Below are positions 1-34,465 of a stretch of 64,000 nucleotides of DNA, piece by piece. Positions within the stretch are counted from its first letter, which is position 1; each line of letters starts with the position of its first letter. The position numbers and the translations under genes are program-made. The notes under the pieces are model-generated. The model saw only the letters and a list, made by a program, of their open reading frames with translations. It did not search any database and had not been told where the DNA came from. The stretch is from contig ADNK01000542.1 of NCBI GenBank assembly GCA_000320545.1, forward strand, positions 1 through 64,000. Reading direction: 5' to 3'. This DNA is from Bigelowiella natans CCMP2755 (Eukaryota; Protista; Cercozoa).

Positions 1-3000
1 AGTCCATTAAAGGTGGAAGCTGGGCATTGACCAGCAGGTAAGTATCTTAGTTTCCTCTGCGGCTTCAAGTCATGGCTTTATACTCTCCTTTTGTAGGGCT
101 GTACTTGGCCTCAGCTGCTGTGCAGGCCCTGCCCCACACCCGTATGATCTGCTGGTCTTGGGTAAGTACAGCAGCCATACCTAGCTTAGACCAGTCTGTC
201 CATAGGGTAGCTGGTCTAGTAGTGTCTAGCTTTAGCATTCAATAGGGTGTTGCTGCATAACTTTATTAGGTTATCGAAGTGGGCATCAAGGCCAGCCTTG
301 GCCCACACCTTAGCGAAGCTGAGGCCTACAGAGTTCTCCTTCCGGTAAGCAGTAGTAAAAGCAGCTGCAGTCCTAGCGTAGGTAGGGGAGAACCTACGTA
401 GTATCCAAGCTGCAGTCTGCAAGAATGACTTTAACTCCTTTGCATTCTTAGGTTTAGGGGCTTGCTGTAGTGCTGCTACTTTCTCGGGGTTTGGGGTGAT
501 GCGGCCTTGCTCCAGGTAATATCCACACCACTTGATTCTTGTAGCTAGGAATGTACACTTCTGCAGTCTAATAGTAAAACCGAAGTGTGCAAACCTAATA
601 AATATATTTTCCAGGAGGAAGATCTGAGCGACGACTGTGTTGGTACATATTATGTCATCATCCACATACACAAACACAAACACCCACAACACAGACGCCA
701 TCCCATCATGTGTGTATGCCCTGTAGTTCTGACTACTGAACGCATCCCCTGATATGCTTAGGCCGTAAGGGAATACGACGAAGTGCCACTTCCTGTGCCT
801 GCTGGAGAACGCGGTAATGGGGCGGGAGGTTTTGTGGATGGGTGTCTGCATGTATGATTCATTTTTATCTAGGGAAGAGTAGTATTTGTATCCTATGACG
901 TGTTCAATAACGTCATCTATCCTTGGTGTAGGTGTCTGGATCCTCTTTATTACTCGGTTGTGGCGGATGAAGTTGTGCGCCAGGCGGAAGAAAGGGTAAG
1001 TAGGTTTCTTAGCTAGCACATGTCTCACGTTCCATGGTGAGTTGCTTGGCTCTATCTTCCCTTCCTTTGCCCATTCATTGATCTGCCACTCTATCTTTTC
1101 CCAGTCCGCTTCCGGTCGCCTATGTTCTGGGTCATTGATGATGCACTCTTCGTATCCCTTCTTTAGCTCGATCTTTACTGGGGTAAGCTTGCTGGAGGGC
1201 TTCGTCGTCGGCTTGGTGATGTCAGAGTACTTCTCGTTTAATATTTTATTAATGTACTTTTTGCCTTTGTCGATATCCCAATCATCAGCTGGGGGGGTCT
1301 TGTCCAGTAGCTCCGTTATCTGTCGGATGGTCTTGCCGGGGTTCTTCTTCCGTAGCTCGGTAGGTGTAGGTAGCTTGTTGTCCGCTAGGTCCATAAACTC
1401 TAACGCATTAACGCTTGACTCAGAGGTCCACTCGTCAAGCCGTATCATGTTCTGGCTGATGGTCCTGCCTGACTTCTTTGGCAACTTAGCAAAGTATATC
1501 TTGTGATTGTAGAATGATATGATCCCCCCTAATTTTTCTAGGGCATCCTGTCCGAGGAGTAGTTCCATGGATAAAGTCATGGCTACTCGGGTCTTGATTT
1601 GGGTCTCCGCGTCGCTGCCAGGTATCTGTAGCTTTAGCATTAGCTCACCGACGGTCTTCATGGAAGAGCTTCCGTCTGCTTGAGCATATTTACGTTCTTT
1701 CTTAGTCACTTGATCCAATAGTCCTAACCTTCTTACTGTGCTTAGGCTTATGAAGGACTTCGGCATGCTGCCACTATCCCAAAGGGCAGGTAGTTTCTTG
1801 TAGTCTCCGTAGCTGTCTTTAACTTTAACCTTGGTCATAGCAACTTTGATAGTCCTGTTAGCGTCTTCGTCATTAATGTTGCATACTCCTAAGTTCTTTA
1901 TGTCGTCTAGGGTCATGGGCTTGTCTTGGTCCTGCGTTGCTGGTACTGCTGTCTTCGTCGGCGCCTGCTTAAGGTGATCTAATATTCCGTTTATCTGCTG
2001 CTGTATAGCATTGATACTGTTCTGCTTTTTGTTCTTATATTTATTGTTCTTCCCGTTGTTGCTGCCTTGCCATTTGCTGTTGTTATATCCTTGTCCTCTG
2101 CCTTTCTTTCTCTTTAACTTCTCGTAGTGTTCGTTGAGCTGCCTGATCGTCATCCTGGGTCGTCCTTCTTTCCTGTCTCTGCAGTCTTTAGCGGTGTGTT
2201 TCCCTTTACGTGAGCAGTATCCGCAACGTCGGTTACCTTCCCTGTCCTTGTACCAGTCTCGCTGCGGCTTAATAGCGTTAATGTTTCCTATGCCAGGTAC
2301 CTTAGGGCTGGTAAACTTGCGGTCCTGCTCCTGCTCGCGTAGGGATATAGCCTGCACTGCTGCCTCCATCGTGGTGTAGCCTTTCTCCGTAACGTAAGTG
2401 GATTCCTTTATCTTTAACTTGAACTCTTCAAACCTTGCCTGATCATCACCTGTGTTGTAATTAAAATCATGTAGTTCGTCGATCATATCCTGGAAGCGCG
2501 TGGCAAAGTCTCTAACAGGTTCTCTCTCATGCTGCATCATTGCTCTGTATTTTCTAATAGCCTGGGGTAGGGAGTTAGCATCCTGTTCATTTACAAAAGC
2601 CTTCATTATCGCCTCAACGTCTCGTAGCCCACTAACTGTAGTGTGTATTTTCTCTAGCTGCCTGATCCGGGTCCTGCCTGTCTCGTAAAGGTCCATGGCT
2701 TGCTTTATTATAGCTAGCCATTTGAGCTTGTCGTTTTCGGTGGGGTTAGGGGTAAAGTCGCAGAGTATACTCCTAGCGTTCTTCCACCACCTCCTTGCCT
2801 CACCTCTTTTCCCGTTGTATTTCGTTATCATAACCGGTGCTGTTTTAACAGACATGAACTGGGTGTTCCGCTGTACCGGCTGCTGCTGCTTGACGGTGCT
2901 CTGGGTCGTCCCCCGCGAGGCGCCCAGACCCCCGTCGTTCCTAAACAAAGCTGCCCACTCTGGAGGTAAGTCTGCTTCGTAATCCATGATGTCCTGCATG

Positions 3001-3332
3001 ATAGCTGCCCAAACATCATGTGTCTGATACTTGTATTCTATCGATACTTTCAGTTTGGCGTAGTTGCTCGCCCTGGGTCGCAAGGCTCGTAATGCCATTA
3101 CGACCTTCTTGCTTTCGGCGGCCACGTCCTCGTCGTCCGCCTCGTAGAAGTTCTCCAGTGCCTCTGCTGCTGCATCTGCTTTCTTAATCCCGGGTGCTGG
3201 TCCCGGCGGTGCCTGTGGAGGTGTTCCTCCTCCTTCCTTAGCGTCCGTATCGCCCTTCCTTTCCTGTTTCTGCTCGTGCCCTTGCACGGCCTGCGAGCCA
3301 AAGTCCTGCTGTTCTTCTAGCTGCTGTGACAT
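1..3332 (-). mobile_element. Ty3/Gypsy-like LTR retrotransposon gag-pol (Gag-zinc knuckle-protease-RT-RNase H); runs off the window edge, frameshifted in the RT/RNase H region
   Basis: Intronless 1038-aa ORF 3332..216 contains a knuckle CGYCSRKGKHTAKDC, protease motif ALWDSGS and RT motifs (SPWN, YYSSLD, PYGL, YVDD, KCTF). An RNase H segment continues in another frame from 238: MLKLDTTRPATLWTDWSKLGMAAVLTQ...EAKYSPTKGEYKAM. PR-RT-RH order fits Ty3/Gypsy. No integrase is visible in the window. Confidence 0.88.
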
Positions 3333-3409
3333 TGTTAGTCAAATCGTTTCCCGTGTGTGGAAGCCAAAGGTTGTTGCGCGTAAGGTGTTCACAGGCCGAG
3401 GCGCTACGT

Positions 3410-3697
3410 GCACAAGTAGGCAGGGGGGGGGAAAGGCACGTTTGCTTCCTTTTGAAGAGTTGTGTTTATTTTTATTAAAGATTATATTTTTATTAAATCG
3501 TGCACTGCGTAATCATTCGCGAAGCTTTCGCGAATGCCGCCGCACGTGGGGCAGCACACTTCCGGTGTGCTGCCATGAGTCCCGCCGGAACCCACGTGCC
3601 TATGCTGTATTAATATCTACGTTATCTATATTCTATATCCGCGACAACCCCTTTGTTGTCGCACGTGACTTGTGCCCGCGTAGTGGTACGCGCTACA
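3410..3697 (-). mobile_element. Candidate 5' LTR/leader of the retroelement; boundaries uncertain
   Basis: Directly upstream of gag. On the minus strand it starts TGTAGCGC (~3697), contains hairpins, then an AT-rich TATA/AATAAA block (3466-3496), and ends ..TGTGCA. No second copy is in the window and no clear PBS. Confidence 0.3.
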
Positions 3698-4328
3698 TGC
3701 TGGCATGGGAAAATTCCCACTGCTAGACTGGAAGCTGTGTCACGCAGTATGTCACATTGCAGCCACAAATCGATCTGATCGACACACAACACTAGAATCG
3801 AACATCGCACGCGCCAAACCTAGAAACAGATGCACCAATCGGCTAGCCCAAAATGAGCTGTGTGTCTGTCACCGCGTGACGTCCATTCTCGCGCGATGCT
3901 GAGCGAAACTCAGATAATTTTGTTGTCTACTTCTCGTTCAAATTTCACAACAGTTATCTGCACGCACGTATATACAGGTATGGCGCATCGGCTTGGGAAA
4001 AGAGTTGCCGATTCTACTTGCTGAGCAGGTTTGGACAAGCATAATATGTGCTAGCACATGCCTAGCGCACAACATATGTGCGTTGTGTCCATCGCATGCG
4101 TGAACTTTGCTGCTATGTTTGTTGTCCTGGATGTTGAACAAGTGAGATTTATTTTTATATGACTTTAAAATATTCTCATTCCATGCAAAGTTCAAAATTC
4201 AACAGGACTGCATCAACATGTTATGAGTTCCACTCGCTTAGCAATGTGAGAAACAAAACAGACTGAATGCAGTAGTATCCCAGGGACGAAAATGCGCACT
4301 ATTAGATCCATCAGGAAGAGAACTGCCG

Positions 4329-5324
4329 CTAGTTGTCTTCAGAAAATTTATGCCTAGATGAAAGCGACATCGATTTCTTTCAGTGAATACGAAACAAGGG
4401 CATACATCATTTATGTGCCGCAATGGCAGAATGTCAGAGAGATTGTGAACATACCCACAGTTCGGGCAGGTGTAAAAACATGTCTGTCCCTCATCCACTG
4501 AACGCATTTGTCGGGTGTAAAACTCCATTTCGCCGTGATAGTCGCAGGTCGGGCATCGCATATCGTCAACCTTTGATAATCCATCATTGTCAGTAAATGG
4601 AATACGATTAATGTGTTTCATCTTTACCGTCAGCACAAGTGAAAGCTGCATACCTTGGCAAGTTCTGCCTCTTCATCCTCGTGATCTCCTGCTTCTGCGG
4701 CAGCTGCTTTGCTAGCCACGACGGCAGAGAGGGACTCTGAGACCAGGTGCACACTGTCGGCCGCTGCAACAGCAACAGGAACGGAGTGGAAGATGAGCAA
4801 CAATCAATATCCGGAACAGGAAATAGAAAAAGCGAAGTGATGAGAAATGAAACACAATATGGATGGCTGGAACGATATATTCGTTTTTATTCAAAATTAT
4901 TACACGAACCTTCCCCGAGAAGGACAACGTTTCCACAGTGCATGCATCGAAGAATACCATCTTCACCAGGCAGGCCCAGAAGGTTGTGACATACATTGCA
5001 GAAGAGCGGTAATCCCTGCAATTCTTCCCCCTCTTCTCTAGTAGTCGTAGCCAGTGGGTGTCGCAGAGGTGTCATCATCGCCGTTTTACTTTCTTGATTT
5101 GGAGAGGAAAACGTCTTCTTTTTTTTAATCTTTTTGCTCTTCTTCTGCTTCTTCTTCTTCTTTTTATTAATTTCGTTGCCGCCATCATTTTTTTTTGCAT
5201 CCAAATGTATCCGCTTCCTCTTCGGCTCTTTTTCTGAAGACGACGACGATAACGAATTCCCTTTTTTGGTAAGAGATTGTTTCTTTCTTTTATTTTTGCT
5301 GCTTTTTTTCTTGTCCTTCTTCAT
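4329..5324 (-). CDS. RPA12: RNA polymerase I subunit RPA12 (ZNRD1), 4 exons, possible Lys-rich N-terminal extension
   Basis: Exons 5324-4910, 4763-4654, 4570-~4455, 4353-4329, all GT-AG. N-ribbon FCNVCHNLL...RCMHCG. C-ribbon [44 protein letters not shown]-x-T matches RPA12 rather than RPC11/TFIIS (DEPMT). Confidence 0.88.
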
Positions 5325-5502
5325 CTTGGAAATAGCGTTTTCCTGCTGATTGGAATGTATAAAATATTCATATGCAAATGTAATTACATATCTCTGTGCA
5401 TATATTTAGTTTAATAATTCCACACAGTACATCACACATGATTCACACACTTGAACCACACACACACACACACCAATATAAAACACAGTGAGGTGTGTTT
5501 TA

Positions 5503-5571
<69 letters not shown>

Positions 5572-5657
5572 TTTATATTTTTAAACTTAAGAACCGTTTG
5601 AGTCCCCATAGAGATTGAAAGCTGAAAAGGAGCGCTGGCTCACGCACGAGAGTGGGA

Positions 5658-5696
<39 letters not shown>
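5503..5696. repeat. (TG)n and (GA)n microsatellites in the RPA12/SF3B4 divergent region
   Basis: (TG)n at ~5503-5568 and (GA)n at ~5662-5696, read directly. Confidence 0.95.
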
Positions 5697-5698
<2 letters not shown>

Positions 5699-6276
5699 TT
5701 TCTCTCCCACTAGACTCTGTATATCCTTGACTCGCCCTATTGATAGATAACGCTGCGAGCCTCCTGTGATGAGACAAATAAATGAATCAGTCCATGATTG
5801 ATGGATGCGGCATCGAACAGGAACTGTAAGGGTTGTAGGGAGGGGGTTGGGGGGGGATGCGCGGCGGTGGCAACCCACAGGCAGCAGCATGAAGGGCTCA
5901 AATTCGAACGAGCACTAACCCTAGAAACGATCAGGGTCCATGAAATCGACCGTAGTCTTAATGGTCCCCTCCCTCCTGTTGCTCCTGGTCTGGTCCGTCC
6001 TGCAGGAGAGATCTAGTTCCGTGTGAAGGGGGAAATGTCGTCGTCTTTCTTCTCGGTTATTAGAATTCCGGGATTAGTGATAATAAAGGAGGTAAATATC
6101 ATGCGACAACCTTTCCTGCGCCTAAATCCAAGATAGCGGGGGTCGCGATCCAAAGCTCAAAGAAAGAGGAGGAGAGTGCGCACGCAGGATCTCAGCGGGG
6201 CTTGGCGAGGAGAAAAGGAACACGTTTTTGTACCAAACTTGCACCTTATCGATCTTGAAAGCAGCGGCTTCCGAGG

Positions 6277-7997
6277 ATGAGCCGTCGAGATAACCATGTG
6301 AGAATTGGCAAAAAAATGCGAAGACGTTTTCTTTTTTTGAGCGCTTCATGAGAATCAGCTTGTAGGAAGCAAGATCGGCCTTGGTCCCTCTGTATTTACC
6401 TTCATTTCTTTATCTTAGGAAAGAAATCAAGAGGCCACGGTATGGGTCGGTGGATTGGAGCCTCAGGTAACAGAAGAAGTTGTGTGGGAGCTCATGCTTC
6501 AAGTTGGACCAGTAGTAAACGTTCACATGCCCAGAGATCAAGTCACAACAAACCACCAGGTTATAGCATTGTCAAGGATATTGGCATTCCGTTCCCTAAT
6601 GTTACATGTCTCTCGATAACATTTGTATTCGTAGGGATACTGCTTTTGCGAGTTTAGGGGCATCGAGGATGCAGATTACGCAATTCGAGTCCTCAACATG
6701 ATAAAGCTGTATGGAAAACCGATCCGGGTGAATAAAGCTTCCAAGGATAAGAAGGTAGATATTAATGCTCTGAAAACGTCACCCGCTTTTCCAATTGGAC
6801 CATGTTATTTACTCATCCATCTATCCATACTAAAAAGGAAAACGAGATCGGCGCCAATCTGTTCATTGGGAACCTAGCCCCAGAAGTTGATGAGAAGCTG
6901 CTTTTCGACACCTTCTCGGCGTTCGGTTGTGTTCTTAGCGCAAAAGTGATGATGGATCCGGATTCAGGGACTTCGAGGGGGTTTGGCTTCGTGAATTACG
7001 ATTCATTTGAGGCTGCAGATGCTTCAATAGAGACGATGAATGGGCAATTCTTTTGCAACAGGTCGGTATTACAGATTACATCCACCCCGAAAGCAAATAA
7101 GAAAAATAATAATAATTGTATATCTTCCTATGTCGTAGATCCGTGGCTGTGTCATATGCCTACAAGAACGATGGAACGAAAAGTGAGAGACACGGTACTG
7201 CGGCAGAGAGACTTCTGGCAGCGAACAGAAGTGCGCAGGGAATGGTAATATATTGATATAAATGGAAAGTCGATCGAGCCACTTTTTCACATAGAATATA
7301 CTATCGTAATGTAACAGGGCTCGAGCACTTCGAGCATTCAGAGAAAACCAGCATTCGCACTGCCTCAGATGATGAACACCTCCTTCAACTCTGGCCCTCC
7401 AAATCTAGGGTGAGCACTTTATTCTGATCATAAACGTGTGCCAATCCAGAAGAAGCAGCCATGTGCACAAACAACAAACCCTGAAGTAAATTTTGAATTT
7501 CTTCTCAGACGCCCTCCTCCAATGGCACGGCCGCCTCCACCACCACTCCCACAAAACAGGATGATGGGAATGCAGCAACGGGGTCCGATGATGATGCCCC
7601 CTCCACCTCCTAATGCCTTTGGTAGAGGACCACCACCACCACCCCAAAATATGGGAAGGGGTCCGATGGGAATGCCGCCACCCCCACCACCTCAAATGGG
7701 GGGGCCCGGTATGGGCCGACCACCCATGAACATGGGAGGAAGGCCACCTATGGGAATGGGAGGACCTATGGGCATGCGCGGACCAGGGCGACTTCCACCT
7801 CCCCCCCCCCAAATGGGAAACAGAGGTACTACTACCAACAACTTCTTATACATTATATGATGCACTGTCTTTGTTCGAACCTAACTCTTCTCTTCACCCA
7901 ACTCGAAGGACCACCCCCCCCGCCAATGCACCGACAAGGGCCACCTCCTGGAATGCCGCCCCCACGACCACCTCCAGTGCCTATGCAAACACAGTGA
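6277..7997 (+). CDS. SF3B4: Splicing factor 3B subunit 4 (SAP49): two RRMs plus Pro-rich tail, ~8 exons
   Basis: Spliced reading MSRRDNH|[40 protein letters not shown]...|GYCFCEF...[25 protein letters not shown]|...[26 protein letters not shown]...|[13 protein letters not shown], then a PPPM/G tail. Stop TGA at 7995-7997. Confidence 0.95.
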
Positions 7998-20214: not shown

Positions 20215-21977
20215 TGTGTGTGTTTGTGCTCGTGCATCAGTACGGTGTAGGAGGGCAGAACCCTATCTTCATCATAGGCGGATATAGCGTTTGGTTCTTC
20301 GCCACGGTTGCCGTCCTTCTGTGTATGGTACGTGCGAAGAAGCGCACAAGCAGCAGCACACGCTATAATAATTACCGGCTTTGAAAGAGAAATATGAAAG
20401 CAATGTACACTGTGTTAACGTTCCGCGCTCGCGCGAGCGGTTACGATATATAGCTGGAAATGAGACAGAGAACTGACCGCATTTCGCCTCAGGATCTTCT
20501 CGAGTGTTTCCTACATGCCCTTCGTCTGCATTGGGTCGAATTTCAGGTCTGACTTATCACGATGATGCAAACGCTGCCAGCACAAAGCAACACCGATAGG
20601 TTTATCGCTGATCGTATGTTAACTCTTTCCCCCAGAACAAATTTTACAACGGAGATGGAATCAAGTTCAAGCCTTTCGAGCTTCCCATAAGCGCTGAAGA
20701 ATTTAGGGCCAGTGACGACTAAAAACATACAGATCGCTTCTTCCAAGTGTGGCATCATGCATAGAAGCAACGATGATATAGACAAATTACATTGTAGCCT
20801 TTACAATCGTGCACGTGTGTGCGTATGACTGTTAAGCTATATGAATGATTTTTAATACTGCTCTAGTTTTCATCTAGTTTATCTTTTCCTGCAGGAGGAT
20901 AGCTACTGCGAGATCCATTTGCTCTCGTTCGCGAGTCGCATGCCATGCCTATGCTTTGTTTGGTGCCATCGTGAGGGAAGATGTGTGCAGCATGTAAGAT
21001 TGCTATTGAATTATCAACTAAATTAATTAAAGCGATCTGCTTATGCATGTGCGATAGAAACTGCTTAGTCGCGTGCCTAATGTCGCGTACATTGCTAGAT
21101 TGTGCAGCGAGTGTATAAGTTAATTTCTAGATGTATTGTTCGCAGTCTTACTAATGCACGCGCGCAGGCTGGCAGGATGCACGATCAACATCATGCACAC
21201 AGCTAGACAGTGCACTTTTGAAGTGTGCTACGTACATGTAGCAGCTACGTACGAGCACGACACATGTTGCATGGCATTGCATACTACAAATTCAATTTTG
21301 TGAAAATTTATTCATTACATATCTCGCATGCGCTGTCGCGCATGCTAGCATGCGTACACCTATACTATATCTAGCTAGGTAGCGGCGTGTTGCATGCAGC
21401 AACATGGTGTGATACAATTGACAGAAGCATAACAATCAGTAATGCATCCGTTTCATGTAAGCTATGACGAACATGCTCATGTGATTCTCATCACGTCTAT
21501 CTGTATTGACATGTTGCTTTTACATATAAATATTCACATCCGACTTGTACATGCATGCCAGGCTGTACATGTCTCGTTATCATTACACTCCCTTGCTCAC
21601 GTGGTATGCTGCTTGCGCCAGCTTGGGCATTGCTATGGCTGATTAAAAGCGACAAACATTATTAGAATATCACGCTCGTTGGATTGAATATTAGAGAACA
21701 CCTCACCTAGATTTTCCTTCACAGCTTTCGGCCTCCCCTGATAAATGCACAATCGTGTACAATTACCTTCTAATAATTCCCTTTTTTCATGCAAGAGGGC
21801 GACCGCAAAGTTGACTCAGAACCCCCCCCCCTTCCCCACGATTGATGATCGATATTGGCTACCACAACGTACCGGGAGATTGAACACAAGCGTTCGTTTC
21901 CGACTCCCGGCCACAGCACGAGACAGCAGAGAAAACGGCTCAAACCTGAAGCAGCGGGGGGAACGTGTGATCCAACG

Positions 21978-22031
<54 letters not shown>

Positions 22032-23493
22032 AACAAGCAAGCACGAAGCAGCTACTTGACGACGCTCCATGCGATACTGTTGATGATGGAACACAGTGTC
22101 CTTCGTCGTGGTTTTTGGTTAAACAACTTCCGTCCAAATACCTTGTAGCTTCTAGGGTAATACATGCCGCCAACGCAGTTGCCATCTTGTCTAATACTGG
22201 AAAAAATTATGATAAATCACACGAGTCAATCGAATGATAAAAGCAGGGCAGCCCTTCTGGACGAAGCAACAACGCATTTAGGCAATGATCGGCGTTCGTA
22301 GCTGCTTTTCCCCCGTAGCGCTCATATTTCTACATTAAGTGTCTGGTTGCTGGCTAAGATGACAATCAGCAAATGTCGCAAGTCTGCACAAATCTTTTTA
22401 TTTTTGTGCTTTGATGCTGCTCTCATATCGAATATGAAGAAATGAAATCGCTCCATGCTCTCTTAAAATCGGACTTTTATCCTCCAAAAATCAAAGCAGA
22501 AACACGAACTATTTTTTCCTTGAATTTCTGTCCTTCGGCACCGCTAGCCATCTGCCGTGTTGCGCGGGACAAGAAATCGACTATCACTGTGCTTTTCAAT
22601 GCCGCCATAGGCAACCCTTGAGGCCTTCGGTTTCAGGAAAAAAAATGAAGCGAAAATAAGGAAGAAGACATTGCATACCTTTCTTTGTTGCTTCTGGTGT
22701 TACATCGCGCTTCGCAAAGCCAGTTCCCCCAGTGGTGAGAATCATCGTGGGCGCATCGTCATCCTTCATATCTGCCCAAGCTCGAATGGCCTCGGATATG
22801 CTACTTTCGTCGTCTGGAACAATCTTTGGTAGAGAATCAGCACAGCGTTATTGCATTGTGCACGTGAGGAGTCTTTGCCATTGCAGCAGCTGATTCTATC
22901 GTTATATAACCGATAATAGACTAGTGATGTGTGTTACTTATGATGGCACCTTCTTGGCGATTACGTGGACGGCATTCCCCGACTCTGAGGCATACTGGGA
23001 GGAAAAACAGCACAAGGAGTGCAACATCAGGAACGCAGCTTGACGATGCGAAGAGGAAGAAGAAGAAGAAGAAGAAGAAGAAGAAGAAGAAGAAGACAGA
23101 GAAGGGGGAGGAGGAGGAGCAGTAGCAGTAGGAAGAGGAGTGATTGTTATTTTCTCTAGTATCTTCTGCTTTCTTAGAAGAAAGTGCGGCTTATAATGCG
23201 TTATGCTGTGCTGTTCATCGAATCATCCTCCTTAACCTTGATCACTCCGGATTCTACTGCAGGCCCTGATTGGTCTTCGTAAGTTCCTTCTGATGCTCGA
23301 TCACTCACCGTCAAAACTGCAACGCTAAGAATGTGGAGAAGGGGGAGGAGGACAAAAATTGGGACCAGATTAGGATAATGATGAGCATGATGACAACGTG
23401 ATGATGACAGCGATCATGATAACGGCGACGATACTTATTGAGGATGGAAAAGATGAGCCATACCTATGTACCAACCACATGTACACACAAACA

Positions 23494-23532
<39 letters not shown>

Positions 23533-25050
23533 CACACACAGGCAGGCATATGGATGTGTAGCTATAGGTGGGGAAAAGCACACGCGACGAGCTGCACTTC
23601 TCATCTTTCCACAGGAAGAATGTAGAGATATGAACAACATTAGCAGCAGCAGCACCACCACCACCACCACAACTACTACTACTACCGAATTTTGAAGTCA
23701 GAGGGAATTCGAGCAGGGTGCCTCGTCATTCCGACACATTCTCCGAGTATCTGATTCATTGTGCTTGCCCCTCCCGTTGTTGTTGTTGTTGCTGCTGCTG
23801 CTGCTACTGAGGCTGCTACATCGTCGGTGGAACGACAGCACACGTCCGACAAGTTGTTCCCAGGATGAGCTGCCGGTCTAGAAGATGAGGATGATGATGC
23901 TGCTGCTGCTGCTGATGCTGATGATACCGTTGCTGCTGTCCTTGCTTGTGATGATGTTGTTGTTGAATTCGGCTTATTCTTTTTTTCCCCACCGCCTCCC
24001 CTTCCTCCATCCTTTGGCTTCTTCTTTTTCGCGGCTTTTGCAGCCTGCAGGAAAGAGGAAAGGTTAGCCTCCCTCACCCCAGAGAAATCATCACGATAAT
24101 GATATATCCGTCATAGTGAGAACGAACGTCTTATTGTGTGCGACCTGCTCAACTTCGGGTGGATGGGAAGCGTGAAGAGTAGCCGTGCTCTTGTACAACT
24201 TCATCTGAGGGAATAATTAACACAACAAAGGATCCTAAATCTGTTCTTCGCCCCCCCTCCCTCCCATATGTAATATCCACATCGTTTATGCTGGAGGTGA
24301 AGCATATCACTATTTTGGAATAATCACCTCAAGCAACAGTCGTTAAAGTAGCTACATTTGCATAATAAACGCAGCAATCATAGAAATGTTGGTATATGTA
24401 CGAAAGGCACACACCTGCTCATCAGTCGCCTTTGCCTGGAACTTCTTCTTCCATTGATTGTATTCCATCCCATAAATTGTATGCAGGCACTGGTTATAGT
24501 CAGCGGCTCCTTTGAAGCGTAGCCTTCCCGCGAAGATCCACTAGCAACAAGTGAACAGCATTTTCCCGTCAGTAAACGATGCCTTCACGTCGTTCGCTTG
24601 CAAGTTTCAAAACCAGATACGGAGGCAGGGAGGGGGGCGAGGAGGAGGAGGAGGAGGGAGAGGAGGAGGAGGGAAGAAAATACCTTTGAGAGACAGTTGC
24701 GACAAAATCCTGCTAGGTTCATTTGGTCGATATTCTATCGGGTATATGATCATTTGACATAATTAAAATTGCAGCATTGGAGAAGTAAGTCATCATGAAT
24801 TTTGACGACGTTCGATTTCCACATCCTTACAAATCCTCATCATCATCACATTTCCATCTATAATCCATCTTAATGATACTAGTATATCTTATTAACCCTC
24901 GCTTCCCTCATCATCATCATCATCATCCTCATGAAGATAACCAGCATTTACATCTCATTTCCGGAAGCCAGCCCCCTCGCTCCCTCCTCCCCCACCCCCC
25001 TCCCGACTTATCTTCCTCCCCTTCTTCTCCATCTCCTCCATGACCAACCT
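8888..25050. repeat. Microsatellite-dense block: (TG)n, (TA)n, (GA)n, (CAT/GAT)n, (GTA)n, (GAA)n and poly-G in most introns
   Basis: Examples: (AT)n 10087-10144, (GT)n 10151-10224, (GAT)n ~13375-13440, G-runs 15983-16002, 17038-17057 and 18092-18113, (GAA)n ~23050-23095. Confidence 0.95.
9573..20722 (+). CDS. ATP6V0A: V-type H+-ATPase V0 subunit a, roughly 35-38 small exons
   Basis: Conserved motifs occur in order across exons: LFRSEEMRYV (~9590), RISRGN, GWVP, PPTYFK|VNKWTSPFQSIVDTYGIARYR|EVNPG..FPFTFGVMY|GDMGHG, PYPYGVDP, NELAFFNSLKMKM, IHTIEFVLG|CVSNTASYLR|LWALSLAHAQL, FLHALRLHWVEFQ|NKFYNGDGIKFKPF. Stop TAA at 20720-20722. The start codon is approximate. Confidence 0.93.
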
Positions 25051-25156
25051 GGACATCCGTCCGAGCCTGCATATGCTTGACAAGTTGCTGGAAAGCATAT
25101 GCCTGTGCTCGGATCTCCGCGAGTTCATACTGTGATGAGCTGTTTTCGTTCGCCAT
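21583..25156 (-). CDS. Fusion protein: N-terminal DUF1244 (CRNC) + low-complexity linker + MogA/Cnx1G-type molybdopterin adenylyltransferase domain, ~12 exons
   Basis: Exons 25156-25049, 24734-24684 and 24540-24415 give [23 protein letters not shown]|[17 protein letters not shown]|[22 protein letters not shown] (DUF1244 pattern). Downstream exons give IR|[21 protein letters not shown]..|[24 protein letters not shown]..|[18 protein letters not shown]|[10 protein letters not shown]|..KGV*. Splice phases are compatible throughout. Confidence 0.87.
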
Positions 25157-25504
25157 CTGTACATGGTTGTAAACACCGCCGCTCATAATAGACAATGGCT
25201 CTACGCAACAGGGAATTCCAGTGTAAACCTTGTGAAGAGTGGTTGCAAGGAGTTTGGAGAGAGAACGAAAGAAGGGGCTGGCCTTGCTCGAGTGTCGCGT
25301 CCGGTCGTCTTCTTTACTTGCTGTACTCCGATGCAAATAAAAGGCAAAAGTGTGAATATTTTCTATCATACGTCATGATATTTTCATTGTCGCAGGATTC
25401 AAAACCTTCAATTTGTAGATGTTAAGGTAAATTGGAGACAGATGGATCAATTTAATACAAATTTGCAGGTTCTCAACAACTTTAACATATTATAAGCAAT
25501 CTTA

Positions 25505-28127: not shown

Positions 28128-29006
28128 TCATCTTAATGAAGATGTAGCCAAATATGTGTGCACAAGATGCGATGGGATGCGGGATGTTATTCGAGAAACT
28201 AGTTCGCTTTTCTCTATGCAGTCGTTGTATGGGACATTATTAAAATTCAAAATCCTTTTCAATACTCTTACAGGAAGAGAGCTAAGGATTTCCCGAACAA
28301 CATCTTCCTTTTGCTCCGAATCCTCTACACTCTTGGTCTCATCAGTTTCCATTGCTTCGACAGAGGTACATGATCTATCAAGATTTGAATCTACAGTGGA
28401 ATTTTGATCACTAGATCCTAAATCTGAGGAAGATGAAGGGCAAGAACTGGAGTTTGCATTTGTAGCTTTGCGGTCAACATTTGCACGGCAAAGAGGACAG
28501 GTGTTGTGTTCTTTCAACCATGGCATGCAACAATCCTTGTGATATGTGTGCTTGCAAGGAAGTTCGATTACTTCATGGTCCTTTTCGTAGCAATCTTGAC
28601 AAATTGCGCACTTTTGTGATGTGATCGGATCGCTCTCAGTCACTTTTCTCACTGGCATAGCATTTACTGCCTCCTTTGAAGCAGGTGTCGCAGTTGGCTG
28701 TCCTTGAGGATCCATCGCTCGTGCCCAAAATTCTCTTGCTTGATCCGACATAGGTCCAAGACCTCTTAACCCTGTAGCCAAACCGGCTTGAAAAAGTTGC
28801 TGCAGCATCTCATTGTTGACTTGACCTGCATTACCGGAAGGACCAGTCGGAAATACAAACTGCACTTGAACAAAGGGGACAAACCGGAAATGCGGTGGTT
28901 GCTCCTGGTGCTGGTTCTGGTGCTGCTGCTGTTGGTGTTGCTGTTGTTGCTGGGGCTGGGGCTGGGGCTGTGGTTGTGGTTGTGACGATTGGGGCTGAGC
29001 TGACAT
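28128..29006 (-). CDS. RING-H2 E3 ubiquitin ligase (RNF126/RNF181-like) with C-terminal SAP/HeH-like motif; coding region intronless
   Basis: PASKEAVNAMP, then CAICQD..LPCKHTYHKDCCMPWL..HNTCPLCR. C-terminal LPVRVLKRIL..VPYNDCIEKSELV. Q/P-rich N-terminus. Confidence 0.88.
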   Translation of the reverse strand: MSAQPQSSQPQPQPQPQPQQQQQHQQQQHQNQHQEQPPHFRFVPFVQVQFVFPTGPSGNAGQVNNEMLQQLFQAGLATGLRGLGPMSDQAREFWARAMDPQGQPTATPASKEAVNAMPVRKVTESDPITSQKCAICQDCYEKDHEVIELPCKHTYHKDCCMPWLKEHNTCPLCRANVDRKATNANSSSCPSSSSDLGSSDQNSTVDSNLDRSCTSVEAMETDETKSVEDSEQKEDVVREILSSLPVRVLKRILNFNNVPYNDCIEKSELVSRITSRIPSHLVHTYLATSSLR

Positions 29007-29334
29007 CGTGAAGCGATTCCGTTTGGATTATGGGCGAGACGTCCATGCTGAGCTGGAAGGAGTGACAATTAAGCGGTGGGAAGATATTTTTAACAAGTCT
29101 CACCAAAGAATTCCAATGCTTTTTATCATGTTTCGGAAACCAGAAGCTTCCTTTCCTTTATCATTTCCCGAAGTAGTCCAGATTTCCTTCTCGAAAGCCG
29201 GAAAACATGAAAGGAGCCAAAAACGATGAAGTTCAGTTGTCGCAGCTTCTGACACCCAAAAATAGAACTTTCCTGCAAATTCACAACGAAAATCGGGATT
29301 CTTCAGAAAACCTAGGAAATCCCTGCGGAAACAA

Positions 29335-31684
29335 ATGTCGAAAGCGCTCGCAGTATCTCGCACGGAACTGTTCACGTTAAGACGACAACAAGGGGTACTC
29401 CGTTTATTGAAGGAAGTCATCTGTCATTTTTTGCATACGACACCAATTAAGGGATGTCGTAGGTGCAGGAACACAAACAGCATAGAGGGTATGCAACGTG
29501 CTGCTTCGACGAAGGTATCGTTCAAAACACACACAAGTCAAGCATTCTTGGGGTAGATAGATCTAGATCTTGTGCATGCAGTGCATGCACCATGTGACAT
29601 AGTGTGCTAATGAATGCATGGCCGATGATGTGGGCTTCATTGTCTGAGCAACTTCTGACCAACTTGCAGGTAAACTTGCTTCTCCAGTAAGAAAACACGA
29701 TGCAAGGTGAGATGAATGCTGTGAAGATTGTTGATGACCTGCTCACTTTTGAAGGTGATATTTTCAGTTGATATGAAGAACACCCGCGAAGAGAAGGACA
29801 GCATTGGTCCTGTTCTGGTTCCTGCCAACAAACTTTGGGGAGCACAGACGCAGAGATCTTTCCAAAACTTTAAGATCGATACGGCACGTTCGCGCATGCG
29901 CGACCCGTTGATTCATGCATTCGGTACTTTGAAGGCTGCTTGTGCTACAGTCAACAAAAAGATTGGCAAGCTTGATGCTAAGATTGCTGATGCTATCATC
30001 CAAGCTGCAAAAGAGGTTTCGGCCGTTCACCCATCATCGTTGTCTACAATCTGATTGCCCTCTCTTCGCAGGTGGCAGAAGGTAAGCATGACGACGAATT
30101 TCCATTGGTCGTATTTCAAACTGGTAGCGGAACGCAGACAAACATGAATTCCAACGAAGTCATCTCCAACCGTGCCATTCAAATTCTGGGCGGTGTGGTA
30201 ATTTCGAAACCTTAAACTACCGAAATATGCTTTGTGTGGTGGTGTACTGTGCGACATTAACAAAAACGTTTGTCGATCAGATCGGCTCCAAGAAGCCGGT
30301 GCATCCGAACGACCATGTTAACAAGGGCCAATCGAGGTTCCAACAAGGATCACATAGCATGCGAATCAACCAATCTGATTTTTACGATATCCGATCAGCA
30401 ACGATACTTTCCCGACCGCAATGCACATTTCTGCAGTGACTCAGGTATATATACCAATGCCCGTCCCTTTTTTCATTTTGACCAAATCGAAACTAACATC
30501 TGAAACAAAACATCACTATCCCGTAGATCAACAAAGTGTTGCTTCCCGGACTCCAGAAGCTGCACGCAGCGCTTGATAAAAAGGCAAAGGAATTCAAGGA
30601 CGTAATAAAATGCGGTCGCACCCATTGGCAGGATGCAACACCGCTGACTCTCGGACAGGAGTTTGGTGGTTATGCCCAGCAGATAAAGAATGCAATCGGC
30701 CGGGTTGCATCAAGTATGCCTCGTCTATGTGAGCTTGCGATTGGAGGCACTGCTGTTGGAACAGGCTTAAATACCTCCAAAGGTTGGAGCGAGGCGATGG
30801 CGAAACAAATATCCGAAATGACAGGGTACCCCTTCACTTCCGCGCCGAACAAATTCGAAGCTTTGGCGGCGAGCGATGCTTTGGTTGAGATATCAGGTGC
30901 ACTGAACACTATTGCATGCTCTCTGATGAAAGTCGCCAACGACATCCGCCTCCTGAGCTCCGGGCCAAGATGCGGTATTGGTGAAATCAGTTTACCTGCC
31001 AACGAGCCTGGTTCGAGTATCATGCCTGGAAAGGTTAACCCTACGCAATGCGAGTCATTGACAATGGCTTGCTGCCAGGTAATTGATTTCATATACGCGA
31101 CCGTGAGCTATGATGATGGGACATCGGGAAGAAAATATTCGGAACATGCCGATGATATTTGTTAGCAGATCCTCATCAGTCTTCTTTTTATTTAAAAATA
31201 ACGTGGAATTTCTGTACGTTGATGATGTTTGAAATGTTGCTGCTCTTTGTAGCAGTGTTTGTAAATACATTTATAATATGCAAAAAAATACACAAATAAT
31301 AACACACAGGTTATGGGTAATCACACTACGGTGAGCATCGCTGGTTCCAACGGGCATTTTGAGCTTAATGTTTTCCGCCCAGTTATGATCAATGCGGTTT
31401 TGCAGTCTATCCAGCTCATCGGAGACGCATCTACATCTTTCTCAGAAAAATGCGTTGAGGGAATCACTGCCAACAAGGAGCGAATTAGCCAATATCTCAA
31501 TTCGAGCTTGATGCTCGTCACCGCTCTTAGTCCTTATATAGGCTATGATAAGGCAGCAAAAGCCGCCCATCACGCACATCATCACAACTTGACACTCAAG
31601 GAAGCTGTCGTGCAGTTGGGGTACGTTAAAGAGGAAGAGTACGCCTCGAAAGTTGATCCATCAAAAATGATCTCCCCAAAATAA
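29335..31684 (+). CDS. fumC: Class II fumarate hydratase, probably mitochondrial, ~8 exons
   Basis: [69 protein letters not shown], signature [15 protein letters not shown]. 5' exons are less certain. Confidence 0.96.
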
Positions 31685-32632
31685 GAATGATAGTTTGTTT
31701 CGATGGAGGAGGTGAATGGAGTCCTTGACCATGACCTCGTGTTAAAGAATAACGTTCAGCAACTGTTTACCTTACATACAGTAAACTTTGCATGAGTAGA
31801 AATTCGGCAAAGTTTCATGCAAGTACCAGCCACGACATTCGCATCGTATGAGGTCTAGCAAGCACTGCCGCGTCGAAAGCATGTAACAATGCGTGCACTA
31901 CTCAGTACCATCTATTACAGGTCATGTGCAATTGCAACGCTCAATGTGCATTCCATACATGCTGCTACAGCTGATATACCAACTAGACTATCTATGCATG
32001 CTTGCATGCGAGTGGTTATGCATGCATAGTGGTTATTTATACTCGAGAAGCCAGCGTGTATATCAGCTAAATCAGTCACACGCGCTACTAGGCTAGCACG
32101 CCGAGTCGTCGCTAATAATGGACATGATACCTAGCTAGCTTAGATGTGCACCTGCTACTACGTATCGTACGTACCTTATTGGCAGTCGTGCTAGCTAGCT
32201 AGCGTGGCTCGTCTGCGAAGTACCTCTGCTAGTATATACTAGCTGATGTACGCATTGCAGCGATACTAGAATAACCAGCATCTAGCTAGCTAGAGGTGTG
32301 TATGCACTAGCGCTAGACTAAGCGGTGCATGTAGACAGCTACACATTATGCTTAGCCAGCTTCTAGCTAGCTAGCCTAATAGTGCGTCGTCAAGTATGTA
32401 ATACTAGTCGAACGCGTACATGCTTCCTGCTTGACACGGCCAGCGACATTGCAATAAGTGAACAGGAAGATTGTCAATTATCAAACAGCTGCTCGCAGTT
32501 TTTCTTGTTGTGACAATTTTTTGAAACTGTACGTGGCAATTTACAATGGCGAACTGGAAAGGGCTATTACAATAGCAGCTTAATCTATTTGCTCTCATCC
32601 ACTCATATATGTATATTTATATTATATTATAT

Positions 32633-33696
32633 TTAACCAAAAAACGATGACCACGTGCTTCCACCTCTCTTTGGGAGCCCCATCTTATTGAAGATGTCTT
32701 CAACATCATCAATACGCTGGAACACAAACAGAGTGCCCGCCGGGCTTCTACTAATCCTGAACTGAGAAACAGCAAGGTTTACAGCATCAAATCGATACCC
32801 AAAGAGCAGAACATACTCGTCAGATTGCTCACAACACCTGATCATCGGAACTAATGTAGGTGCAGATCTGAAGCGCTCTTGCTGGGGCGGGAATGCCTTC
32901 TTGCCCACCAGAATCAGCCTTGCGATAGATATATACCGGATATGTTATGCTATGCTTTCGGATAAGGTGTGCGTGTTGCTGACCTCAGTAACAATTTGGT
33001 CAACACCGGTGAACTTGCGGCCTTGCTCGTCTATTTTGTCAAGGAGGAAGATGCCTCTCATCTCGTTCTAATGATAATGGAAATACGGCTCAACAAAGAT
33101 AGGGCGTGGTGAATAAGAATTGACGCATCAGCACACCTTAATCTTTGCCCCTCCGAATACTTCAAGGATCTACTTTCAGAAAATTTGTAGATCATTTTAA
33201 ATCGATAGAGAACAACGCAACCGATAGCCGCGTTACCGCACCAAATTACCTCGACTGTTGCTGATGTTCCTTCAGGCTCCTCTTGGCTTAACGCTTGAGC
33301 CTGACCGGAAAGTATCATTTTAGAAGATGTAAAGAAATATAATCAGAGCCCGAAGCATCACAAGTCCATCCTTCCCGACGCTAGAATGATAGCGAGCACC
33401 ATGCTGAACTTGTGATTACACCACACACCTCCTCTACGGTTGGCAGTGAACGCAGAGCTTCGTTGAACTTCATGCTGGGCACATCCTCACTCCTGAGGAT
33501 TTGGAACCTAGCGGAGGGAGGAGGGGGAGATTTTTACGAAATGAATAATTCAACACTGCCTCCGGGATAGCATTCCAAACGGAAATTCGAGAGCCGAGGA
33601 AGGGGGGGGGGATGGAGCGAATGAGAGAAAGTAATGGCTGTACAGGCTATGAAGTTTGCTCCCTGGAGTTTTGGCAAGCCCTGTCATTCCTAAATC

Positions 33697-33735
<39 letters not shown>

Positions 33736-34465
33736 CATTGCAAAAGAGGCAGAACAATGGTTGCGATGTGCTACTACCGCCCATGTTCCTGTACTGTTCA
33801 CTAGTTGTAAATAGAAGTCTCCATCCACCGATTAGCTGGTCTGACTCATACTTCACGACACATGCCGTTCATCGATCAGCGCACGTTTTGCAAGATGTCC
33901 GCGGAATATGGATGAAAGGACAATGAAGATGACAAGGGCAGTGTTGATGATGATGGTGATGGTGGCAATGAACGATGGTGATAATGATGATGACCGATGA
34001 TGAGTTCAGAAAAAATACAACCTTGTATCCATACTGCATCTCCAAGTCTTGAGCAGCCTATACAATTCAGATTAAATATTTAAACTTTGTGCTTTCTAAA
34101 TTTTCAATAGAATTTTTCGATCAGAAGTATGAAACCTTTTCAATTCTGAGGTAAAGTTTCTTATCTTCGTCAGCGATACCGATCCCGCGTGAGTCTTTTA
34201 GAACCTTTTCATATTTTCGTTAGCGTCGGCAACGAGATGGACATCAAAAAGAGCGCGATATATTCGTTGAAAATAAATAAAGCAAACCAGTGCTAGCCGG
34301 TTGAACAGCTCTGCCTCTGTAGCATTTTCTACGACCTTCATACATGATAAAACACACGTGATTTGACTACGAGTAAATACTTAAACAATAAAATTATTTC
34401 TTCCCATATATCTCTGCTTTATTGACATTCACAAACATATACACCCAATTTATGTGTATATAAAT

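Follow-up and report, generated by a model that had tools for sequence, protein, structure and literature searches.

A DUF1244–MogA fusion gene in Bigelowiella natans and the recurrence of DUF1244 beside molybdenum insertase domains

Introduction

The molybdenum cofactor (Moco) is required for nitrate assimilation in marine primary producers, and its biosynthetic pathway has, to our knowledge, been considered complete for decades. In Cnx1 (plants) and gephyrin (animals and fungi) a flexible linker connects a G domain with TVSD, PDD, TGGTG and RDVTPEA motifs to another domain that oligomerises, the MoeA or E domain. A similar layout is predicted for a minus-strand gene in a 64,000-nucleotide stretch of the Bigelowiella natans CCMP2755 genome (contig ADNK01000542.1, positions 1 to 64,000; hereafter the window). 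Here, however, the partner of the G domain is DUF1244 (PF06844), and E is encoded on another contig, C1365. The letters D, G and E denote the DUF1244, MogA/Cnx1G and MoeA/Cnx1E domains below.

Three recent surveys of insertase architecture describe E and G domains only (PMC13262936, PMC11489736, PMC11733289), and in algae and protists G has been reported as a protein of its own, not joined to E (PMC10385300, PMC13262936). Chlamydomonas CNX1G and bacterial MogA/MoaB resemble the window protein in this separation, but the latter has about 200 extra N-terminal residues containing a complete DUF1244 and a conserved Cys motif. Some protists depart from Cnx1 and gephyrin in another way, adding DUF1244 as a third module to E and G (D-E-G, E-D-D-G, D-G-D-E). 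A precedent for an insertase gaining an accessory ligand-handling domain by fusion is archaeal MoeA1 with its periplasmic-binding-protein (PBP)-like oxyanion-binding domain (PMC11733289), although that domain has another fold, is joined to E instead of G, and belongs to another lineage.

DUF1244 itself has solved structures (PDB 2o35, which is SMc04008, and 3fyb), both uncharacterised. The bacterial stand-alone proteins share 55-60% identity over ~105 aa with the DUF1244 of the window protein, with CxxC and most polar residues invariant, but they end after ..LHAxISGH and have neither an S-x-V-C(C) arm nor a fused enzyme. The searchable literature on DUF1244, PF06844 and SMc04008 contained no functional study, and no mention of DUF1244 as a third molybdenum insertase domain. 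Fused D-G proteins are already present in public databases under automatic names, and the window gene is one more member of this existing, undescribed family. What appears to be new is DUF1244 as a recurrent third insertase module with strict bacterial MoeA co-occurrence.

Results and discussion

One gene very probably encodes DUF1244 and a MogA domain

The predicted window protein is a DUF1244 domain followed by a linker with an invariant Cys motif and a MogA/Cnx1G molybdopterin adenylyltransferase domain (Table 1). Its gene comprises 12 exons on the minus strand (25156-21583), the ends of which were anchored one by one. The spliced frame is 1197 nt long (398 codons) and closes with TAA at 21585-21583. 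All 11 introns have GT..AG boundaries and measure 68-482 nt, and the exon phases chain without any stop before the TAA. The surrounding window DNA is eukaryotic in character (~45% GC, microsatellites, short exons). The initial annotation had proposed about 12 phase-compatible exons giving one frame, and this is borne out by splice sites, phases and colinearity with two homologues, P0010 and P0009. The junctions that it placed at 24415-23325 agree with the gene model except for a trivial difference at one end, exon 6 beginning at 23324 and not at 23325.

Exons were searched singly, and the two homologues served as full-length proxies. P0010 (370 aa) is closer to the window gene than P0009, a transcriptome-derived protein of the chlorarachniophyte Lotharella globosa. 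Colinearity was assessed by per-exon local alignments against both. The alignments are strictly colinear with P0010 for exons 1-6 and 8-12 and span both domain junctions. The exon 4/5 junction (..EVEQ followed by AAKAAKKK) and the exon 5/6 junction (..FKIR followed by VAVLTVSD) are conserved in P0009 and P0010. Such exon-by-exon colinearity with natural full-length proteins is a match far beyond chance. In addition, exon 5 is a single open stretch in which the linker, with its LSDVCCR, is followed by the first G-domain strand (..SDFKIR), so the linker and the MogA domain are physically joined in one exon. Exons 1-12 therefore very probably belong to a single gene, as judged from genomic sequence and homologues. 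Two adjacent genes could in principle have been misjoined: the frame of exon 4 could continue to a stop, exon 5 has internal Met codons, and the model for this alga is a genomic prediction. Conservation of the exon 4/5 junction in both homologues speaks against this. Together with a DUF1244 function unrelated to Moco (considered below with the gene neighbourhoods), such a misjoining is very improbable.

With profile cut-offs of 27 bits for PF06844 and 26.6 bits for MoCF_biosynth (PF00994), Pfam searches placed DUF1244 above the cut-off in exons 2 and 3 and MoCF_biosynth in exon 8. By alignment, exons 1-4 tile the complete ~105-aa bacterial DUF1244 from its first helix to the C-terminal ..LHA.. 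helix, and the invariant residues G-F-C-R-N-C, Y-G-M and W-K are present. The MogA motifs TVSD, PDD (Asp), TGGTG, RDVTPEA (Asp) and NLPGxP (here NLPGRP) are all found in exons 6, 8, 10 and 11 and are invariant in an alignment of 74 homologues. For the homologues P0009 and P0013 the best match was NF006932 (molybdopterin adenylyltransferase), at 116 and 143 bits against a cut-off of 158; the TIGR00177 domain model scored 92.5 and 105 bits (cut-off 85.35). The complete DUF1244, the SDVCC linker and the full MogA domain with GGTG and both Asp residues were all recovered where the initial annotation had put them.

Table 1. Exons and motifs of the DUF1244–MogA gene (window positions)
Feature	Position	Strand	Content	Profile score or similarity to P0010
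Exon 1	25049..25156	-	Proposed start codon and N-terminal helix of DUF1244	Aligns with residues 1-25
Exon 2	24684..24734	-	DUF1244 core with CxxC	PF06844 34.5 bits; 15/17 identical, residues 26-42
CRNC (CxxC)	24704-24693	-	Exon 2	
Exon 3	24415..24540	-	DUF1244 second half	PF06844 38.2 and 35.9 bits; residues 43-85
Exon 4	24145..24204	-	DUF1244 C-terminal helix, the end of bacterial stand-alone proteins	Residues 86-104
Exon 5	23686..24044	-	Lys-rich, then Ala/Ser/Thr-rich linker, LSDVCCR, first G-domain residues ..SDFKIR	Residues 106-176
SDVCC	23849-23835	-	Exon 5 linker	
Exon 6	23237..23324	-	Start of MogA domain	18/24 identical, residues 208-231
TVSD	23311-23300	-	Exon 6	
Exon 7	22950..22994	-	Variable MogA helix; length suits the exon 6-8 gap in P0009	Weak similarity
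Exon 8	22679..22823	-	MogA catalytic core: IVPDD, TTGGTG, RDVTPEA	PF00994 42.1-42.7 bits; residues 252-299
PDD	22817-22809	-	Exon 8	
TTGGTG	22736-22719	-	Exon 8	
RDVTPEA	22709-22689	-	Exon 8	
Exon 9	22142..22196	-	MogA helix	Residues 302-315
Exon 10	21873..21945	-	MogA segment	18/23 identical, residues 321-343
Exon 11	21707..21737	-	NLPGxP motif continues	9/10 identical, residues 344-353
Exon 12	21583..21638	-	C-terminal helix and TAA	Aligns with residues 355-369 of 370

The E domain is encoded elsewhere in the genome

The 91.4-Mb assembly (3736 contigs) was searched for the remaining insertase domains. It contains exactly one DUF1244 locus, the window gene. The sole MoeA_N match in a profile search of the contigs lies on C1365, where a multi-exon MoeA (Cnx1E) gene with N-terminal, central and C-terminal MoeA exons occupies ~28970-34220 on the minus strand (L006 ~1971-7218). 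No G domain was found among its exons or within 2 kb downstream, and neither MoeA_N nor MoeA_C was found in the window gene or the rest of the window. The initial suggestion of DUF1244 standing in for the E domain is contradicted by this separate MoeA gene and by proteins of other taxa that carry D and E in one polypeptide (D-E, D-E-G, E-D-D-G, D-G-D-E), and was rejected.

The only other MoCF_biosynth match in the genome is an intronless FAD-synthase-like open reading frame (ORF) of 529 aa (C3558:86200-87790; L003:1207-2796, minus strand). Its N-terminal half is PAPS-reductase-like and its C-terminal half MoCF_biosynth/CinA-like. Human FAD synthase has these two domains in the opposite order.

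DUF1244 is fused to G and to E in many protists

Exon 3 alone was searched against 1.84 billion representative proteins. Nine matches were obtained, of which six combine DUF1244 with MoCF_biosynth; P0003 is a 79-aa fragment with DUF1244 only, and P0001 and P0002 fall outside this tally. Among the best 120 relatives of P0009, 115 contain both PF06844 and PF00994, and the architecture sought in other algae and protists thus proved widespread. More than 100 D-G protein clusters were found in chlorarachniophytes (Lotharella), diatoms, haptophytes, dinoflagellates, pelagophytes, euglenids and diplonemids. Named sources include Diplonema papillatum, Eutreptiella gymnastica, Thalassiosira oceanica, Seminavis robusta, Mayamaea, Prymnesium parvum, a Pavlovales species, Pyrodinium, Alexandrium, Durusdinium and a pelagophyte. 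Many of these fusions come from MMETSP/Trinity transcripts, and therefore from single mRNAs. In some D-G proteins (P0004, P0005 and P0006, diatom and metagenome proteins) two to four tandem DUF1244 repeats precede G.

Fusions to MoeA were found in 11 clusters using the DUF1244-MoeA half of P0007 as the query. Their domain orders in Pfam are D-E (P0258, P0259, P0265, P0274), D-E-G (P0260, P0262, P0264), E-D-D-G (P0261 from the prasinophyte Cymbomonas, P0268, P0303) and D-G-D-E (the diplonemid P0007). The diplonemid insertase (P0007, P0092, P0259) is apparently D-G-D-E, and its two DUF1244 copies are 98% identical; because of these near-identical copies Trinity splits the insertase into D-G and D-E isoforms. 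A D-G isoform of Hemistasia terminates in the beginning of a second DUF1244 copy, so the D-G-D-E order is probably real there too. In a tree of DUF1244, a single eukaryotic clade that unites the G-fused and E-fused copies is compatible with the data (approximately unbiased test, p = 0.74), which is weak evidence given the 105 columns.

The linkers of D-G proteins carry a motif S-[DNS]-V-C-[CG], in which the first Cys is invariant in 74/74 aligned proteins and Ser and Val are each conserved in >=96%. The dinoflagellate variant reads HS[NS]VCGQxC. The motif is absent from the aligned bacterial stand-alone DUF1244 proteins. It lies N-terminal to DUF1244 in D-E-G proteins, after DUF1244 in a D-E protein, and between D and G in E-D-D-G. 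Across the architectures it therefore travels with DUF1244 and not with G. The window protein shows the features of this fusion family, with the order D-linker-G and the S-x-V-C motif in the linker.

Bacterial DUF1244 occurs only in genomes with MoeA

Co-occurrence was examined in 252 genomes (151 Alphaproteobacteria and 101 Gammaproteobacteria). In Alphaproteobacteria DUF1244 is present in 87 genomes and MoeA_N in 104; MoeA accompanies DUF1244 in all 87, and the 47 genomes that lack MoeA also lack DUF1244. The pattern is repeated in Gammaproteobacteria, where DUF1244 was found in 23 genomes and MoeA in 64, with MoeA in 23/23 DUF1244 genomes and DUF1244 in 0/37 MoeA-negative ones. For both classes pooled, MoeA is present in 110/110 DUF1244-positive genomes and DUF1244 in 0/84 MoeA-negative genomes. 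One-sided Fisher tests, which ignore kinship, gave p = 4e-25 (Alphaproteobacteria) and p = 5e-6 (Gammaproteobacteria). Small genomes of 1.2-1.8 Mb that keep MoeA retain DUF1244 as a single copy.

Two genes that are common beside DUF1244 served as controls. GapR is present in 17 of 20 listed MoeA-negative genomes. FGase has a prevalence like that of MoeA (105/151 genomes), but 6 genomes with DUF1244 lack it and at least 14 without MoeA have it. DUF1244 is missing from many Moco-making bacteria, which implies that it is dispensable for Moco synthesis as such, and is an accessory rather than a core enzyme.

One contig in the bacterial set (L085/G006) is labelled 'Candidatus Fonsibacter ubiquis' but sits in a 3.5-Mb assembly. 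The 'Candidatus Fonsibacter' lineage is streamlined and its expected genome is far below 3.5 Mb; mis-binning or mislabelling is possible.

Gene neighbourhoods of bacterial DUF1244

Neighbourhoods were read at 83 loci from all six-frame ORFs. Several independent loci place DUF1244 among Moco genes. In Caenispirillum salinarum the order is mobA-DUF1244-moaA. A 1.8-Mb gammaproteobacterium has a Moco island (L092; G212:C1:986500-991000) with DUF1244-moeB-Oxidored_molyb (msrP-like) divergent from mobA-mobB, in which the DUF1244 stop overlaps the moeB start. In another genome (G047) moeA is directly upstream of DUF1244, moeA also adjoins it in Azospirillum, and a MoCoBD enzyme adjoins it in five loci. 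Across the 83 loci a MOFRL glycerate-kinase-like gene recurs as a neighbour, as do GapR, FGase, pyruvate kinase and YbdK.

The initial annotation had placed DUF1244 beside folX, folE and folM in pseudomonads. Of these only folM (dihydromonapterin reductase; NF005066, above cut-off) was confirmed, directly upstream of DUF1244 in two Pseudomonas species. Neither folX nor folE adjoins DUF1244 in the two Pseudomonas loci examined, and in one of the two species the sole FolB/FolX-family match is on a different contig from DUF1244.

In many Alphaproteobacteria a conserved block has a YbdK-type carboxylate-amine ligase directly upstream of DUF1244 (13 loci), FGase further upstream (27) and gapR directly downstream (33/83). 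The adjacency to a gene of the Glu-Cys-ligase family may hint at thiol chemistry. A 904-aa open frame in G176 was considered as a bacterial fusion and rejected: DUF1244 stands alone at its end, and the frame is spurious.

The neighbourhoods bear on the second form of the alternative raised above, in which DUF1244 would serve a purpose unconnected with Moco (one linked to GapR or YbdK, say) and its fusion to G would be an inherited accident. This would account for the most frequent neighbours, namely GapR, FGase, pyruvate kinase and YbdK. It is at odds with the four fusion architectures with G and E, and with the transcript-derived fusions in a related alga. It also fits poorly with the controls: the containment of DUF1244 within MoeA-positive genomes is 110/110, compared with 81/87 for the syntenic FGase, and GapR does not follow MoeA.

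Structure and conserved residues of DUF1244

Roughly half the residues do not vary among bacterial DUF1244s, including CxxC and many polar residues, and CxxC is invariant in 64 DUF1244 sequences. AlphaFold 2 (AF2) models of P0010 and of a bacterial DUF1244 place CxxC at the start of a helix, and in P0010 both the D and G domains are modelled with confidence. By motif reading only, the G-[FM]-C-x-x-C at a helix start resembles the MxCxxC of the Atx1/CopZ metallochaperones and the CxxC of thioredoxin-type proteins. The all-helical fold of DUF1244 is, however, unrelated to these, and no membership is claimed.

The family is classified as an interlaced obligatory oligomer in SCOP (PMC2954204), and the AF2 monomer superposes badly on the chains in the crystals (template modelling (TM) score 0.4-0.57), as expected for a swapped dimer. 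Both observations are compatible with an assembly module: an intertwined DUF1244 dimer tethered to trimeric G (elsewhere to dimeric E) could build higher-order insertase complexes in which molybdopterin (MPT)-AMP is channelled from G to E, by analogy with the G trimers and E dimers that organise gephyrin and Cnx1. The domain is found beside G, beside E, between both or ahead of each, and in B. natans, where G and E are separate genes, the pair would profit from a bridging element. Yet the invariance of CxxC, the polar residues and the linker Cys exceeds what a mere scaffold needs, and the bacterial stand-alone protein is tethered to neither enzyme. Assembly as the main function is unlikely.

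CxxC at a helix N-cap is also a common redox-switch geometry, and DUF1244 might be a sensor or regulator (of redox state, molybdate or another metal) that tunes the insertase with no contact with its substrate. That many Moco-making bacteria do without DUF1244 would suit such a role, as would archaeal MoeA1, whose fusion to an oxyanion-binding PBP-like domain indicates that insertases recruit ligand-binding accessories (PMC11733289). Fold searches returned no known sensor fold or ligand site, though, and strict, housekeeping-like single-copy retention in the small MoeA-keeping genomes suggests a constitutive role. A sensor is improbable.

DUF1244 as a probable accessory of the insertase step

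From domain architecture and gene content we strongly infer that DUF1244 assists the molybdenum insertase step of Moco biosynthesis as an accessory module and does not stand in for E. The Rosetta-stone link between DUF1244 and Moco, first suggested by the window gene, is upheld by the D-G, D-E and D-E-G fusions, by the MoeA-only bacterial occurrence and by the presence of some loci inside Moco clusters. Taken as a whole, the evidence probably reflects a real D-linker-G gene whose DUF1244 acts as an accessory at this step.

Several points weigh against this explanation. The linker motif of P0010 has a predicted local distance difference test (pLDDT) score <50 in AF2, with no defined D-G arrangement. 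Fold searches with the bacterial DUF1244 model (Foldseek, VIA-align) brought up no functional analogue, the matches being limited to 2o35 and 3fyb at low TM. Metal binding and redox activity of DUF1244 are putative, read from motifs, and the single-gene model of this alga derives from genomic sequence and homologues. The Fisher tests are uncorrected for phylogeny. Among the sampled genomes 58 MoeA-positive ones are without DUF1244, as is E. coli. Finally, the commonest bacterial neighbours (GapR, FGase, pyruvate kinase, YbdK) are not Moco genes, which makes the operon evidence sporadic.

How an accessory of this kind might work can be sketched, along the lines of the metal or redox protection that the initial annotation proposed. 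The invariance of CxxC and of the linker Cys, together with the way the Cys arm follows DUF1244, gives hints of such chemistry. The CxxC at the helix N-cap and the flexible S-x-V-C(C) arm could act together, and their thiols would keep the MPT dithiolene or the pterin reduced, or would load or unload a protecting metal. Meanwhile G would adenylylate MPT and pass the product to the separately encoded MoeA (E). Thiol-based handling of oxygen-sensitive MPT in this specific form is rather doubtful. A little less doubtful, but still tentative, is the broader possibility that DUF1244 is an unrecognised, conserved thiol or metal chaperone of the Moco pathway, which would guard or prepare the MPT dithiolene at the insertase. 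Aerobic Alpha- and Gammaproteobacteria would have it, and early eukaryotes would have gained it a single time and kept it as a third module. The E-D-D-G order in a prasinophyte hints that Cnx1 itself formerly contained DUF1244, which land plants, animals and fungi would since have lost.

Should DUF1244 prove to be a third recurrent module of the insertase, a concrete and testable role would follow for a family that has structures (2o35, 3fyb) but no assigned function. It would then also be clear why diatoms, haptophytes, dinoflagellates and other important primary producers of the sea have a 'separate G domain', and there would be a candidate for the factor that shields the oxygen-sensitive MPT dithiolene, or loads it with metal, on the way from MPT synthase to molybdenum insertion. 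Bacterial DUF1244 orthologues are found in hosts amenable to genetics (Caulobacter, Sinorhizobium, Pseudomonas).

Other features of the locus

An in-frame ATG at 25186, 30 nt 5' of the proposed start, may be the true start and would add 10 residues (MSGGVYNHVQ; 25186-25157, minus strand). Homologues begin near the downstream Met. The introns of the gene hold long microsatellites of the (GA)n, (CTT)n, (CT)n and (CCT)n types (~23530-23490, 23110-23045, 22030-21975 and 24670-24620), and exon 5 is itself rich in GCA, ACA and TCA repeats. Just 3' of the stop codon lies a GCATGC-rich palindromic stretch (20850-21560).

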